A DNA stretch of 5,681 bases, taken from positions 1 to 5,681 of the forward strand of contig CDMY01001033.1 of NCBI GenBank assembly GCA_001179505.1. The letters run 5' to 3'. Within the stretch, counting starts at the first letter, position 1; each line of letters starts with the position of its first letter. Shown one piece after another: positions 1 through 5,390 of this stretch. The DNA comes from Vitrella brassicaformis CCMP3155 (Eukaryota > Protista > Chromerida). Both the position numbers and the translations under genes were made by a program. Below the pieces are notes generated by a model that was given only the letters and a program-made list of their open reading frames with translations, was not told the origin of the DNA and searched no databases.

Positions 1-1
1 T

Positions 2-1183
2 GAGATAGAGCGTGCCATTATAAATGCATACCAGCCGAAAGGCAACGTGTATGGCAATCCATGCCCACACTTTGCTGCGAGGGGTTTTCGTGTTGCCTTG
101 GTGGGTGGTGGTGTGCAGAGAGGCAGGCCTGGCTCCTGGCAGCGTCAGCGCATGAACAGTGGCTCTCTCTCTGCTCACCTGCATGCCAACATGTACAGAA
201 AAGGCCTAGAGTCATCGCTCGTTGACCGTGTTGTATGTCGGTTGCGGCGCGTGCCCCCCTCTATGCACGCACCCCCTGGCTTTGACCCCCTCCCTGTGCA
301 CGAGCCGTGGCAGCCTGCTGAGCTACTCTGCCTCTCCCTCCCCAGCCCTTTTGCCCTTAGCAAACACACATGGCGGTGGGGTAGCTACAGTCAGGCGTCG
401 CAGGCATGGCAAGAGCGGCATGCAGGTCGTGCAATCGACCTGTATTCTGACTCGAGCTGTGCTCCGCTGCTAGTCTGTTTTGCGGCCCAGAAGGGGACAC
501 ATGTTGAGTGGAAGCGGGTGCCTGACGACTCTCTCTTCCGTCTCTTGCGCTTGGGGTATCGGTTGCGTGTGTGGGGGAGGCGGATGCACTTCCTCCGCCG
601 CCTGAAAGGTGTCTTTAAGCACCGTAATCTAGTCTGGCCTGAGCGTACCAAGCTGCGTGTGCCTGCGAGTATCTTTGTTGCTGCCCGTTTACGTGCCCAT
701 TTGCGTGATTTGGTTCTTGCTCAAGGGGTGGGCAGCGAGAGGTGTCGTGCTGTTTTGTCGAGCACATCTTTGTGCAATTCACCTGCCCGGTCATATCGGC
801 GGGTGCTATGCAATCACATTGCATACGCCAAGAGTGTCAGCGAGGAAGAGATAGCGATGGCCGACACGTCGTTTCCCCTGCCTGATGGTGCGTGTGCGCG
901 CATAGAGGACAACATGGCTCTTCCTGCGATTCATGAGATGCACAAAGAGCACGACGCTTTGGAGAGAGAGCTGCGTGTATGGGCGGACACGAATGAGATC
1001 GATTTGCCTGCCTCTGTCATCTCTTCCATAGTGACGGACTGCTCGCTTCCGTCGAAGTACATCACCACGGAGGAGATGGAGGTTGCAGATCGTATCAGCC
1101 GTGCTGCCGGTCATATGAGTGAGCGGCACATATGCGTACCGTTGGATAAGAACAGCAAGCGTGCACTTGTCTGTACGAGAGAG
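2..1183 (+). CDS. PLE polyprotein, N-terminal part: end of GIY-YIG endonuclease, ~360-aa linker and first RT motif (5'-partial, runs into the gap)
   Basis: There is no stop in frame +2 from nt 2 to 1183. The ORF-track start at 47 is a GTG inside a frame that is already open. PLDKN at 1139-1153 corresponds to the P-x-D-K motif at the start of PLE RTs. Confidence 0.8.
8..46 (+). other. C-terminal motif of a GIY-YIG endonuclease domain (ERAIINAYQPKGN)
   Basis: It matches E-x3-I-x4-P-x2-N, the conserved catalytic Glu helix plus terminal Asn of GIY-YIG nucleases such as UvrC-N and PLE EN. The GIY and YIG motifs would lie upstream of the window and cannot be seen. Confidence 0.65.
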
Positions 1184-1483
1184 NNNNNNNNNNNNNNNNN
1201 NNNNNNNNNNNNNNNNNNNNNNNNNNNNNNNNNNNNNNNNNNNNNNNNNNNNNNNNNNNNNNNNNNNNNNNNNNNNNNNNNNNNNNNNNNNNNNNNNNNN
1301 NNNNNNNNNNNNNNNNNNNNNNNNNNNNNNNNNNNNNNNNNNNNNNNNNNNNNNNNNNNNNNNNNNNNNNNNNNNNNNNNNNNNNNNNNNNNNNNNNNNN
1401 NNNNNNNNNNNNNNNNNNNNNNNNNNNNNNNNNNNNNNNNNNNNNNNNNNNNNNNNNNNNNNNNNNNNNNNNNNNNNNNNNNN
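1184..1483. other. Assembly gap (300 N) inside the RT coding region
   Basis: Run of 300 N. The round length suggests an estimated gap, so the frame across it cannot be inferred. Confidence 0.99.
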
Positions 1484-1485
1484 AA

Positions 1486-1944
1486 TGTGGGAGCGAGAAG
1501 GATGCGTTTTCTTTCGTCAAGGGAGACATTCCATCCATGTTCACCAACATAGATGGAGACAGCGCACTTTCTGCAGCCAGGGAGGTGCTTACCTTTGCTA
1601 AGCTCCGCACACATGGTCGGTATATATGTGTGAAGAAAGGCACACGTGTGGAGGGTCGCATCACGAGGCAGCGCAGCAAGAGCAAACAAGACGTGTCATT
1701 TTCTTTTGGTGAGGTGGGGCGCCTGATGAGTTTTGCATTGCGTTGGCGGGTCTTTCGCATCGGTCAGATCGTCATGCGCCAGCGCACAGGTCTGCCGATG
1801 GGCGGGATGTCTTCCATGGTGATGACTGGCCTCGCTCTGTCTGCTCGAGAGAGGGATTTCTGTCGTGAGCAGATCTTTGCTCGCCGACGGCAAGGCCTTT
1901 TCTCGCAGCTGCCTTGGCGGGCGGTTCGTTACGTGGATGGCTGA
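1486..1944 (+). CDS. PLE reverse transcriptase palm segment (frame +1), ending prematurely at RYVDG-stop
   Basis: CGSEKDAFSFVKGDIPSMFTNID (first catalytic Asp motif), QRTGLPMGGMSS (PLE QxxGxPMG motif) and RYVD, followed by TGA at 1942-1944. Confidence 0.85.
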   Translation, partial: CGSEKDAFSFVKGDIPSMFTNIDGDSALSAAREVLTFAKLRTHGRYICVKKGTRVEGRITRQRSKSKQDVSFSFGEVGRLMSFALRWRVFRIGQIVMRQRTGLPMGGMSSMVMTGLALSARERDFCREQIFARRRQGLFSQLPWRAVRYVDG

Positions 1945-2377
1945 GTGCACGTACAGCGGCTGTCTTGCGCTAGACATAGAGGAGGTCGGTTCGTCTGTCA
2001 CTTTTCTGGACGCACACATTGTTGGAACACACGAGCAACCACACATAGAACACACTAGTCGCAACAGCGAGCATGTGGACACGCTGGCCGACATGCGTGT
2101 GACACGTTTCTTGCCGTTCCTTGGCCGTGTGCAAGGGGACGTCAGAAGCGTGAAGTGCATGTTTCATGGACATGTGTTGCGTGCGTTGGACTGCTCGCCA
2201 TCCATTCAGGCAGCTTCTGCGGCGTTGCGTAGGGTGGTAACTGAGTGGTGGATGATGGGCTATCCGGCTGACTTGCTATATAGATTTGCATGCGCCACGC
2301 CTGACGTGCATCCACTAGTGAAGGCCCTGCGTGCTGCATTGCGTTCTCTCTTTTATGCGCAATACAACCGGGCCTGA
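1940..2377 (+). pseudogene. PLE RT thumb/C-terminal segment (frame +2), out of frame with the palm segment
   Basis: AECTYSGCLALDIEEVGSSVTFLDAHI...FHGHVLRALD...WWMMGYPADLL matches the PLE pattern E-x5-7-FLD ... G-x3-R ... GYP. It is joined to the palm by a frameshift at ~1940. Confidence 0.8.
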
Positions 2378-2523
2378 CGTTTTGGCTGCGTGCTTTTGAT
2401 CTTGCGTCTCGTGGATCGCGCCTTGCCTTCTCAGTTTGCTTTTCGGCCCAGTGCTGCTGTACAACACTGCCAAGGGCCTGGCTATCGTCTCCCACACACC
2501 TGAATCGCCCATCTGCCTTCCTG

Positions 2524-2638
2524 GTATGCATGCGTGCGGACACGGAAAGGGAACGAGGGCACGGAAATGGACGCATATGTGTGTGTTCGTGTGTGGGTCT
2601 GTGCGTCGTCGATGTGCTGTTGTGGTGTGGTATGGCAG
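2524..2638 (+). other. Putative spliceosomal intron (115 nt)
   Basis: CTG|GTATGC donor, GT/TG-rich 3' half and TGGCAG| acceptor. Confidence 0.5.
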
Positions 2639-2853
2639 GTTGTTTTTCGCACTCTTCTGTCGCCTCGCTGTTGCGTTTGGGTGCGCTGTACAATACTCTC
2701 TGGTTCGCAAGCGCACACACTGACTGGATGGCTGGCTTGTGTGTGTCCATCGGGTTGGTGGTGTTGTGTGTGTTGGTGGCAGGTTGGTTTTCGCACCCTC
2801 TGTCGTGTCGCTTTTCGTTCGGGTGCACTTTTGCCATCACTCTCTGGTACGCA
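2634..2853 (+). repeat. Degenerate direct repeat with 144-nt period: 2634-2709 and 2778-2853, each containing a 64-nt AG|...|GT exon-like unit
   Basis: Both units begin GGCAG|GTTG(T/G)TTTTCGCAC, contain TCTGTCG, TCGCT and GGGTGC, and end ACTCTCTG|GT(T/A)CGCA. A manual alignment gives about 50 of 66 columns identical. Confidence 0.85.
2703..2782 (+). other. Putative spliceosomal intron (80 nt)
   Basis: CTG|GTTCGC donor (weak), CA-rich then TG-rich body, TGGCAG| acceptor. Confidence 0.4.
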
Positions 2854-2953
2854 TCAAGGCAGACAGACAGACAGACACACAGGCAGACAGACACGACCAC
2901 ACACACACCACACTGTCTGTGTGGCTGCCTGGCTGTGCATGCGATGTCCTCAG
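2847..2953 (+). other. Putative spliceosomal intron (107 nt) containing GACA/CA microsatellites
   Basis: CTG|GTACGC donor, (CAGA)n and (CA)n in the 5' half, TGTCTGTG-rich 3' half, TCCTCAG| acceptor. Confidence 0.6.
2860..2913. repeat. Compound (CAGA)n/(CA)n microsatellite
   Basis: cagacagacagacagacacacaggcagacagacacgaccacacacacaccacac. Confidence 0.95.
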
Positions 2954-3139
2954 ACGTGATCTTTGCTTTTGCCGGTCGTCTGCGAGTTTGGCAGCGGCAG
3001 TTCCCTGCCTTGTCAACGCTCACAGCGCCCATTGATTGAGCTCGCTGCATGACCGGCAATGCCTGAGGACTTTCACGACAGACGTTCATTCATTCAATCG
3101 CTCTCGAGTCCCCACGCTTGAGTCAACCTGTGTTGATCT

Positions 3140-3162
3140 AGACCATCCCCTTCGGATGGTCT
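3140..3162. other. Perfect 9-bp hairpin AGACCATCC-ccttc-GGATGGTCT
   Basis: 3140-3148 is the exact reverse complement of 3154-3162, with a 5-nt loop. Function unknown. Confidence 0.9.
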
Positions 3163-3286
3163 GAGCAGAGCACAAGAAAACCAACTACAGCCTCATCAGA
3201 TACACACACGCACACAAAGGACTGTTTTGTCCCGTCTTGTGGCAAGTCAGTCGGTCGGTCCGGTCCCTCTGTCATGCATTGGTCAG

Positions 3287-3561: not shown

Positions 3562-4218
3562 GTACGAACAGAGAGAGCGTTCGTGTGGGTCGTTTACGCA
3601 GAGAGGGTCATGTGCGCCTGCCGCTGTGGTGTGGTGGTATGCGTCGGTGCTGCTGGATGCTCGTGCTTCCGTGTCTCTGTCGGTGGTCTGTCTGCCGTGC
3701 ATCACCTATCCACTGCATCCTCATGGCGTCACGTTCCAACACGAGCTCTGGCGCCATCTGGGAGCTGGCCTGGTGCTGTATTGTCTACCATTGTCTGTCA
3801 GTCTCTCTGGTGTGCATGCTTCGCTTCATGTTCTTGATCGGCGGTGCGCCTGCCAGATGCATGACAGACAGGGTGACAGACGGACTACCAGCCAGTCATG
3901 TGCTGATATGCCAAGAAATCCCCGCTGTCTGCTCTCTTCACACAGAACTTTACAGAGTCAGCCCCCACTTGTCACAGACAGCAGCCCACTACAGTCTCTG
4001 TGTAATTGGCGAATTGCGGCAGTGCCAATGCGGTCAGGCACCTCACACACCCACACCACCACACTCACACCCAAACGACGACCGGCAGACGCCCCAGCAG
4101 CACAGAACACCGCAGCCAATCGGACAAATTCACTTACTGACGAATCACGGATGTCGACTGACTGTCTGTCGCACCACAGCGCCAACCAACCCTCACCGTG
4201 CAGGCAGGCCTGCCTCCC

Positions 4219-4563
4219 TCAGACGAAAAGCAGGCAGAGCAGGGCAGTGGCGCCCGCCATGCCACAGCAGACAGAGAGAGGACCTTCTTCGCAGAGCAAT
4301 ACGGATGGAAGCGAATTCCATCTGGCCTCCTCAAACCACACCCATGAAGCGGTGAGCGTCACCGGTACCGCCGCGCACAGCGCCACCCTCGGCCATAAAC
4401 CAAGACCCGTCTTGCCGCCCTTGTCCCCTGTCAGACGTCCCTCCAGTGCCTCAATCTTCGCCTCGACTGCACGCAGCCTCTCTCTCATCAGCTGCAGCTG
4501 TTGCTGCTCCTGCTGGTCGGCCGTCGGCTGATTGGAAGCGGCGTGAGGCTCAGACGGCACCAT
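4219..4563 (-). CDS. Putative small coiled-coil protein with two C-terminal hydrophobic segments (114 aa from ATG 4563; may be the 3' part of a longer gene)
   Basis: Q-rich then heptad-like QQLQLMRERLRAVEAKIEALEGRL, followed by hydrophobic VALCAAVPVTLTASWVW and SVCCGMAGATALLCLLFV-stop. Confidence 0.5.
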   Translation of the reverse strand: MVPSEPHAASNQPTADQQEQQQLQLMRERLRAVEAKIEALEGRLTGDKGGKTGLGLWPRVALCAAVPVTLTASWVWFEEARWNSLPSVLLCEEGPLSVCCGMAGATALLCLLFV

Positions 4564-4810
4564 ACTCTCTATCAGTGGTTGTGAGAGCTGCTGGGTGCGG
4601 CAGTCCAAAAAGATTGCTGCTGGACCTGCTGGTCTTCTTCTTGTAAGAGCGAGAGAGATGTGTGGAAGCGTTTCGGTGCCGTTTGCCGTCGATGATGAGG
4701 TGAATGAATGCAGCGGAGGAAGGGCACCACACCACTTGGCACCACAGGAACGCAGTGGGAAGCGAGGCACAGATCTGCACACAAAAAAATGCAGCCAATG
4801 ACACAGTCAT
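4550..4810 (-). CDS. 86-aa ORF resembling a bipartite (signal peptide plus transit peptide) leader
   Basis: MTVSLAAFFCVQICASLPTAFLWCQVVWCPSSAAF is hydrophobic and ends SSAAF. It is followed by basic, Ser-rich IHLIIDGKRHRNASTHLSRSYKKKTSRSSSNLF. It ends in a different frame from the 4219-4563 ORF. Confidence 0.3.
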   Translation of the reverse strand: MTVSLAAFFCVQICASLPTAFLWCQVVWCPSSAAFIHLIIDGKRHRNASTHLSRSYKKKTSRSSSNLFGLPHPAALTTTDREYGAV

Positions 4811-5390
4811 GAGCACATCTCAACAGGTCCCGTTGCGCATCTCAACAGGTCCTGAGTGGGGAACAGGACGAGGGGTCAAAGGGTTTGTTACCCTATAGCC
4901 CCACGCGGCCAAAGTGCGGCGTCTGTGCGCCTTGTCGGACAGCTGAGCGTTGCGAGGGTGAGGCACTCGGCCGACAGACAAGAGGGCGAGAAGAGTTACT
5001 CGAGTCAGTCAGTCGTCCTCTCGACTGGCGGGCTGTTGAGCTGACAGACATCGGAGGTGAGGGAGGCCCAACACTCACTGAATCACTGACTGAGTGATGC
5101 GCTCATCCACTCACCTCAATGAATGCGTTGGCCTTTCTTTCTGTCTGTCTGTCTGTCTGTCTGTGTGCCTCTCTCTCTGTGTGTCTGTCTGTCGGCCCAT
5201 CGGTGCAGTGTGGCTCAGGAGCGATGGCGAACCCTCTTCACCTGCCGCTGCTGCCGCTAGTGACGGCGGGGGACATAGAGTGAAAGGACATATTGTAAAA
5301 ATCGATCGAATGAAGCCGATTTTTTCAAATTTTCAGCCATCATGTGGGTGTCAGGTTTGCCAGCTTGGCAAGACGAACCACTGCGAGCTT
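4809..5390 (+). CDS. Putative spliced gene or pseudogene encoding a protein with two Cys4 motifs (exons ~4809-4826, 4849-4957 or -5056, 5209-5390; probably continues)
   Basis: The joined frame reads MSTSQQ|VLSGEQDEGSKGLLPYSPTRPKCGVCAPCRTAERCE|VWLRSDGEPSSPAAAAASDGGG...PSCGCQVCQLGKTNHCEL|. There are GTGAG donors at 4958, 5057 and 5391 and a GGTGCAG acceptor at 5208. Both 4957 and 5056 are phase 1 and compatible with 5209. Confidence 0.5.
4816..4852 (+). repeat. 15-bp perfect direct repeat CATCTCAACAGGTCC with 22-nt period (4816-4830 and 4838-4852)
   Basis: Directly visible: catctcaacaggtcc-cgttgcg-catctcaacaggtcc. Confidence 0.95.
5057..5208 (+). other. Putative spliceosomal intron (152 nt; it may instead start at 4958)
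   Basis: GAG|GTGAGG donor, (CTGT)6 and TC/TG-rich 3' tract, GGTGCAG| acceptor. Confidence 0.65.
5141..5164. repeat. (CTGT)6 microsatellite
   Basis: Six perfect CTGT units. Confidence 0.97.

Follow-up and report, generated by a model that had tools for sequence, protein, structure and literature searches.

A degenerate copy of a probable Penelope-like retrotransposon with an N-terminal GIY-YIG nuclease in the chromerid Vitrella brassicaformis

Introduction

No retroelements are closer to telomerase than Penelope-like elements (PLEs). In the canonical groups (Penelope/Poseidon, Neptune and Nematis) a GIY-YIG endonuclease (EN), a DKG-type motif and a reverse transcriptase (RT) related to that of telomerase (TERT) are encoded in one open reading frame (ORF), with the nuclease, which carries a CCHH motif, placed C-terminally; these elements have tails and pseudo-long terminal repeats (pLTRs) with hammerhead ribozymes, and no insertion in the RT fingers. 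The present analysis concerns a stretch of 5,681 nt taken from the start of contig CDMY01001033.1 of Vitrella brassicaformis CCMP3155 (hereafter, the window), of which positions 1-3200 are very probably a dead copy of a PLE with the permuted arrangement, that is, an N-terminal EN followed by a telomerase-like RT.

The branch of PLEs with permuted N-terminal EN was described only in 2021 (PMC8557442). Within it, metazoan Naiad elements have an ORF of ~1,000 aa with a CCHH motif within the GIY-YIG domain, a CX2-5CxxC motif before it, a CxC motif, the variant DKA and a fingers insertion, as well as tandem/pLTR structure. Chlamys elements, reported by Craig et al. from green algae, Selaginella and Physarum (PMC8557442), encode in one ORF a GIY-YIG domain, located N-terminally, that retains the R, H, E and N residues and is free of CCHH and CX2-5CxxC, followed by an Arg/Lys-rich block, a linker with CxC (zf-CDGSH-like) and GxKF/Y motifs, a DK motif with a variable third residue, and an RT with a long spacer between motifs A and B. 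For Chlamys, partial tandem units and insertion at (CA)n or (C)n microsatellites have been described, and Naiads and most Chlamys have no hammerhead (PMC8557442). In the TSAR supergroup (telonemids, stramenopiles, alveolates and Rhizaria), PLEs were first reported in 2025 from a brown alga, and the authors name their Ectocarpus Chlamys the first PLEs in TSAR (PMC12477816). No report of an alveolate PLE was found in the literature searched, and the available supplements of the Vitrella genome paper (PMC4501334) do not mention Penelope, PLE or GIY.

Architecture of the element

The V. brassicaformis assembly (72,700,666 bp in 1,064 scaffolds; C numbers denote its contigs) was searched with sequence pieces as read, with neither consensus building nor repair of frames, as in all searches described here. 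Six to seven loci of the window's family were found, several of them at contig ends, and a further copy was recovered as a 4,554-bp metagenome contig (L022; ENA ERZ893784), 94% identical to the copy on C671. The window itself starts within the element's ORF at the contig end, the remainder of the GIY-YIG domain being off-contig, and thus contains roughly the 3' four-fifths of one copy (Table 1).

An initial annotation of the window had recognized an E-x3-I-x4-P-x2-N motif at 8-46, placed it in the same open frame as the RT start motif PLDKN, and proposed on this basis a PLE with permuted EN-RT order. Both observations were reproduced: the motif lies within EIERAIINAYQPKGN, and a frame that begins at base 2 stays open through 1183 and holds this segment together with PLDKN. 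Window 2-46 aligns with residues ~192-206 of the 686-aa ORF of L022, and a full GIY-YIG domain was found upstream, in the frame of the RT start, in C494, C287, C217 and L022, which bears out the permuted order. The copy on C494 has a single 574-codon open frame that takes in GIY-YIG, with sequence upstream of it, and extends to PLDKN at the contig end; it shares 95% identity with the window over 1.15 kb. The one on C217 (locus L005) is near full length, frameshifted, and carries an insert of ~1.5 kb, while L022 has 686 and 355 codons in one frame separated by a single TAG. Selenocysteine insertion or read-through at this in-frame stop was considered and rejected, because the TAG codon of L022 is Trp in C217.

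Based on the sister copies and L022, the complete frame has ~1,040 codons (1,041 in L022). The encoded parts begin with a helical N-terminal region, which is followed in turn by GIY-YIG, an Arg-rich (KR-rich) block, a linker of ~330 residues, DKN, RT1/RT2 with a Cys/His cluster, CxxC, motif A, an 85-residue spacer, motif B, YVDD, a second CxxC and the thumb, after which nothing follows. In agreement with the initial annotation, no C-terminal nuclease was found after the thumb and stop in the window or in the sister copies. In C217, ~1.5 kb of unrelated sequence (4247-5729 in L005 coordinates) separates the N-terminal region from GIY-YIG, as an insertion or a rearrangement; L022 is uninterrupted at this position.

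The expectation that the PLE RT core would follow PLDKN in an ORF ending at 2377 was only partly upheld: the RT and its terminal TGA are present, yet the coding sequence is distributed over three registers instead of one continuous ORF. The RT downstream of the assembly gap is read in a different frame (1486-1941), in which the Asp of motif A (KGDIPSMF) is found at 1525-1527 and motif B (QRTGLPMGG) at 1780-1806, YVD is all that is left of motif C, and a stop codon at 1942-1944 directly follows RYVDG. The third register, from 1940, runs from AECTYSG... to QYNRA and matches the ...QYNRA* end of protein P0001.

The first of these breaks is an artefact. Window 1-1183 is colinear with L022 1845-3027, and window 1484 corresponds to L022 3458, so that the true length behind the 300 N is ~430 nt according to L022 (3028-3457) or 443 nt according to C217. 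Since 430 mod 3 = 1 joins both frames exactly, the frame jump results from the 300-N estimate of the gap. The flanks of the gap belong to one subfamily of 92-97% identity (5' part, 95% to C494 and 92% to C287; 3' tail, 93-97% to the C287 tails), and in other copies the region encodes RT1/RT2, the Cys/His cluster (YVLPKDKC..GC.KQHAHER.I.S) and the first Cys of CxxC. The contig C494 ends, C743 starts, and the window has its gap within the same ~450 nt between DKN and motif A, suggesting a systematic problem at this multi-copy region, where the assembler breaks. The second break is genuine: a 50-nt deletion (1937/1938) removes the second Asp of YVDD and the CxxC that follows motif C, and shifts the frame. 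Given the loss of half of the YVDD motif and the cut at the contig end, this copy cannot encode an active RT; it is dead and truncated.

Table 1. Features of the retroelement copy along the window
Feature	Position	Strand	Basis or remarks
GIY-YIG nuclease, final 15 codons (catalytic Glu helix to conserved Asn)	2..46	+	translation EIERAIINAYQPKGN
Nuclease-RT linker	47..1138	+	open frame; Arg-rich block resembling a nuclear localization signal, RGRPGSWQRQR, at 119-151; without CxC
PLDKN (DKG-type N3 motif of PLE RTs) at 1139-1153 and RT N-terminal start	1139..1183	+	
Assembly gap, 300 N	1184..1483	.	
RT fingers and palm	1486..1937	+	translation, alignment, model of L022 orthologue
50-nt deletion site	1937..1938	+	DNA alignment against L022, C743, C671
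RT motifs D/E and thumb, shifted register; natural stop TGA 2375-2377	1940..2377	+	translation
Element 3' untranslated tail, ending ...CAGCCTCATCAGA	2378..3200	+	matches L022 272-1071, C287 and C419 tails
3'-junction flank, CA-rich run TACACACACGCACACAAAGG, possible microsatellite target	3201..3220	+	

Endonuclease and reverse transcriptase

The nuclease occupies residues ~107-209 of the 1,041-codon frame and follows the pattern LYVLF...YYVGST...R..EH...E..I....P..N. Across 36 relatives, Y111, G124, R132 and H136 occur without exception, Y122 and E194 almost without exception. Its sequence, LYVLFSPDSSIYYVGS, contains no Cys, and lacks the CCHH and CX2-5CxxC fingers, whereas R, H, E and N are retained and the consensus keeps P..N. 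Pfam GIY-YIG was matched at E 1e-3. A GIY-YIG fold in the upstream extension had been named beforehand as the test of the permuted reading, and the predicted structure agrees with it: in the AlphaFold model of the 686-aa piece the nuclease region has a predicted local distance difference test score (pLDDT) of ~85-92, and its best match in the PDB is I-TevI (Z 6.7, root mean square deviation 2.4 A, 87/92 residues), followed by UvrC (Z 4.9) and Slx1 (Z 3.2). A Foldseek search with the whole 686-residue model gave no match at E<=0.001, the similarity to GIY-YIG structures being clear only upon re-alignment, and sequence searches against PDB chains (single RT, RT profile and full-length profile) gave insignificant results and did not find GIY-YIG. 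The linker consensus, aligned with ~35 long relatives, is r..P....r.r without conserved Cys. The linker was modelled as mostly helical, without a clear PDB match, and no match to the TERT TEN and TRBD domains was detected.

The DKN variant, which had appeared atypical beside animal Penelope RTs, fits the DK-plus-variable-residue description of Chlamys (PMC8557442), and the Asp of the DK motif is invariant in the 36 relatives (D573 of P0002). Between the Asp of motif A and the Gln of motif B there are 85 residues, including the basic insert already pointed out in the initial annotation, which sits at the position of the Naiad/Chlamys fingers insertion; the 85-residue spacer was modelled as helix-hairpin-helix, and is a candidate for the insertion in the fingers domain (IFD). 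The RT has conserved Cys motifs at three places: the Cys/His cluster lies between RT1 and RT2, one CxxC precedes motif A and another follows YVDD, and all of them would probably bind zinc.

Pfam yielded nothing useful on the window's own pieces. The AlphaFold2 model of the L022 RT orthologue, built from a 30-sequence alignment, has a pLDDT of 90 and is closest to TERTs (Foldseek 9e-9; VIA Z 13.4-14.7 over 304-320 residues, thumb included). Diversity-generating retroelement RTs (12.4), group II intron RTs (11.6) and retron RTs (9.6) come next by Z, with shorter alignments. This ranking of predicted structures, which is distinct from a phylogeny, fits an RT of PLE type. As in TERT, an extra segment is present between motifs A and B, but sequence identity is 10-13%, and TERT is a nuclease-free, single-copy host gene.

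Relatives and a second Vitrella family

A HMMER scan of 1.84 billion representatives retrieved 224 relatives, many of them 1,000-1,276 aa long, with the RT C-terminal and GIY-YIG motifs N-terminal; none of the matches with long C-terminal extensions was a canonical PLE with C-terminal EN. Apart from one protein already in the query alignment, word-index protein searches found nothing beyond the query's own contig, whether the RT piece, the 686-aa piece or the RT alignment was used. In a protein atlas, used as a lead only, the RT was nearest to clusters with green-lineage members (scores 0.97-0.98), animal PLE clusters being further off.

The RT-profile search of the genome revealed a second PLE family with N-terminal EN in Vitrella (C1049, C654, C766 and C33). 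Its copy on the minus strand of C1049 (1149-4574; L025) has an uninterrupted frame of 1,142 codons encoding GIY-YIG, an Arg-rich block, a CxC..GH motif (CPCSLP...GGHVC), DKS, an RT with MDD, and the thumb, which is the textbook Naiad/Chlamys layout. This family and the metagenomic relatives P0136, P0083, P0113, P0115 and P0138 share with the window's family the order GIY-YIG, Arg-rich block, linker, DK, RT and thumb. They differ from it, although the second family resides in the same genome, in having CxC..GH ~115 residues before DKS, MDD in place of YVDD and no CxxC pairs in the RT, and in forming a separate clade. The RT profile of the window's family matches such CxC-bearing elements with N-terminal EN, the second Vitrella family included, at E 1e-15 to 1e-22. 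Within the CxC clade, P0136 has a significant N-terminal Pfam GIY-YIG match, and P0115 reaches the Pfam RVT_1 cut-off, with weaker matches in P0113 and P0083. As a separate observation, P0113 and P0115 have significant matches to PCIF1_WW (PF12237; E 4e-8 and 1e-7) between nuclease and RT, a domain that we have not seen mentioned for PLEs.

The RT tree comprised 120 sequences, with the relatives coming from the searches described here; it contains no curated Chlamys, Naiad, PLE or TERT references, and matches spanning <300 of 369 profile positions as well as identical sequences were left out. Fifteen sequences without CxxC pairs in the RT, the second Vitrella family among them, fell on one side of a branch with a Shimodaira-Hasegawa-like approximate likelihood ratio (SH-aLRT) support of 97, and the CxC..GH motif was present in 8/8 of those having upstream sequence. 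In the remaining 105, among which is the window's family, the RT contains CxxC and CxC is not conserved. The window's family forms a long, isolated branch near this split; no C-x-C occurs between its nuclease and DKN, and none is conserved in ~55 long relatives. In sum, it represents a deep branch, specific to Vitrella, within a large group with N-terminal EN that does not carry the Naiad/Chlamys CxC motif.

Compared with the described systems, the window's family agrees with Chlamys in the single ORF, the type of EN, the basic block after it, the DK motif, the long A-B spacer, the partial tandem units described below and the absence of a canonical hammerhead. It is set apart from the published description (PMC8557442) by a linker without CxC and GxKF/Y, and it differs further in the Cys/His cluster between RT1 and RT2, in the two CxxC motifs, in lying outside the clade of CxC-bearing elements, which served as proxy for Naiad+Chlamys in the tree, and in its host (an alveolate, versus the green lineage, Physarum and, since 2025, Ectocarpus). 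With Naiad it has in common the permuted order, the ORF length, the fingers insertion, the tandem/pLTR structure and the lack of hammerhead, and none of the four Naiad features CCHH, CX2-5CxxC, CxC and DKA. As for the canonical groups, likeness extends to the pairing of GIY-YIG with a TERT-related RT in one ORF, the DKG-type motif, and the tail and pLTR signatures.

Copies, tails and junctions

Each of the genomic copies seen carries a truncation, a frameshift or an interruption. L022 represents one head-to-tail unit, 4,130 bp long, with 1-424 repeated at 4131-4554; C287 has two tails followed by a head with the ORF; the end of C743 consists of a tail plus ~80 nt of head; and C671 and C494 are 5'-truncated. 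Partial tandems, tails and 5' truncation are published traits of PLE insertions (PMC8557442), and internal initiation of reverse transcription has been demonstrated for an Anolis PLE (PMC11167929), both of which the traits of this family match. By analogy with studied PLEs, the nuclease would nick chromosomal DNA and the RT would copy the element RNA onto the nick, through target-primed reverse transcription; the head-to-tail units and extra tails would be accounted for by initiation inside an RNA that is multimeric or extended by read-through. The copies have diverged under purifying selection: dN/dS (ratio of nonsynonymous to synonymous substitution rates) ranges from 0.10 to 0.32 at dS 0.1-0.9, and is 0.11 for window 1940-2377 against L022, indicating that selection acted on the protein while sublineages diverged, which active master copies would be expected to show.

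The window and C671 share the 3' end ...CAGCCTCATCA(G/A)A. The 3' flank of the window is TACACACACGCACACA, while that of C671 is not a microsatellite, so that the CA-rich type is found at 1/2 readable 3' junctions. At C671, CGTCTC occurs near both junctions; it was considered as a target-site duplication and, not being flush, was taken as chance. Rfam (E<=1) detected no hammerhead ribozyme in either the window or L022. In the tail of the window (2636-2870) there are two diverged direct repeats of ~100-140 nt, ~77-81% alike, which are also present in L022 (496-601 and 648-752) and match no Rfam family; a (CAGA)n run detected with Tandem Repeats Finder follows them at 2860-2893. Downstream of the element, window 3201-5681 matches none of the element loci compared, and contains a (TCTG)n microsatellite (5136-5193) and, on the minus strand, a 187-codon ORF with a Gln/Leu-rich, coiled-coil-like stretch (4219-4782).

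Alternative explanations

Several points weigh against the identification of the window's element as a PLE with N-terminal EN and telomerase-like RT. The CxC and GxKF/Y motifs, diagnostic for Naiad/Chlamys, are missing from its linker; its GIY-YIG match is below the Pfam gathering score, and Pfam RVT_1 misses its RT; comparison of the RT profile with PDB chains was insignificant (group II maturase, E 0.024; TERT, 0.4-0.8); the evidence bearing on a sister relationship of PLE and TERT comes from structure comparison only; neither an intact copy nor a target-site duplication was found among the family copies examined; and the family is known here solely from DNA sequence. The failure of RVT_1 and the leading position of the maturase among sequence-profile matches, together with strong Foldseek matches to retron and group II RTs (2e-7 to 1e-5), could be accommodated by convergence on PLEs of an independent fusion between a homing-type GIY-YIG nuclease and a non-PLE RT, be it of group II intron-like, retron-like or another type. 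TERTs, however, top both structural rankings, aligned over RT and thumb (304-320 vs ~250 residues), a DK motif precedes RT1, RT similarity to the CxC-bearing elements with N-terminal EN is significant, and PLEs typically have this head-to-tail tail structure, all of which makes such a fusion very unlikely. Still more improbable is that the loci are immobile host genes, a small family that arose from a retroelement through domestication of its RT: while the small number of copies and their low dN/dS would be in keeping with it, their uniformly disrupted state, the head-to-tail arrays with repeated tails, the positions at contig ends, an ORF readable without introns and the retained catalytic residues of the nuclease all speak for a mobile element.

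Within the PLEs, the initial annotation had offered a Chlamys-like or independently permuted element. The first term holds: the family is called Chlamys-like, and is at most a putative Chlamys member, because it has no CxC linker motif and lies outside the CxC-bearing clade; the accompanying remark that an alveolate host might mean a divergent lineage, the host being indeed V. brassicaformis, proved the better half of the reading. We tentatively propose, at somewhat less than even confidence, that the family belongs to an unnamed third lineage of PLEs with N-terminal EN, sister to Naiad+Chlamys and not nested within them, which would comprise >100 clusters at 50% identity, almost all from unannotated eukaryotic metagenome contigs. 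This lineage would either never have had CxC or have lost it long ago, and would instead conserve the putative zinc-binding Cys/His cluster between RT1 and RT2 and the two CxxC pairs flanking motifs A and C. Alternatively, although we lean against it, the family may be an ordinary member of a diverse and paraphyletic Chlamys, CxC having been lost secondarily as in Physarum_Pp1, so that only the host would be new. The remaining Chlamys features (EN type, DK with variable residue, long A-B spacer, tandem units and no hammerhead) are indeed all present, one CxC-less Chlamys, the Physarum element just mentioned, is on record in PMC8557442, the nearest atlas clusters are those with green-lineage members, and 'PLE/Chlamys' has been reported for the stramenopile Ectocarpus (PMC12477816). 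What argues otherwise is that CxC is not conserved in any of the ~55 long relatives, against its presence in all eight members of the other clade with upstream sequence, that the CxC/CxxC split is well supported in the tree, and that the CxxC pairs and the Cys/His cluster of the RT go unmentioned in the sections of PMC8557442 consulted.

Significance

The element in the window extends the permuted PLE design to alveolates. Since Pfam fails to recognize these proteins, genome annotations will miss them. With two distinct families in a chromerid, PLEs with N-terminal EN are placed at the base of the apicomplexan lineage. If the large CxC-less clade with cysteine motifs in the RT is confirmed as a lineage of its own, it would be a major added branch of the PLE tree, and would bear on which features, such as the fingers insertion and any zinc sites, were present in the ancestor of PLEs and TERT.

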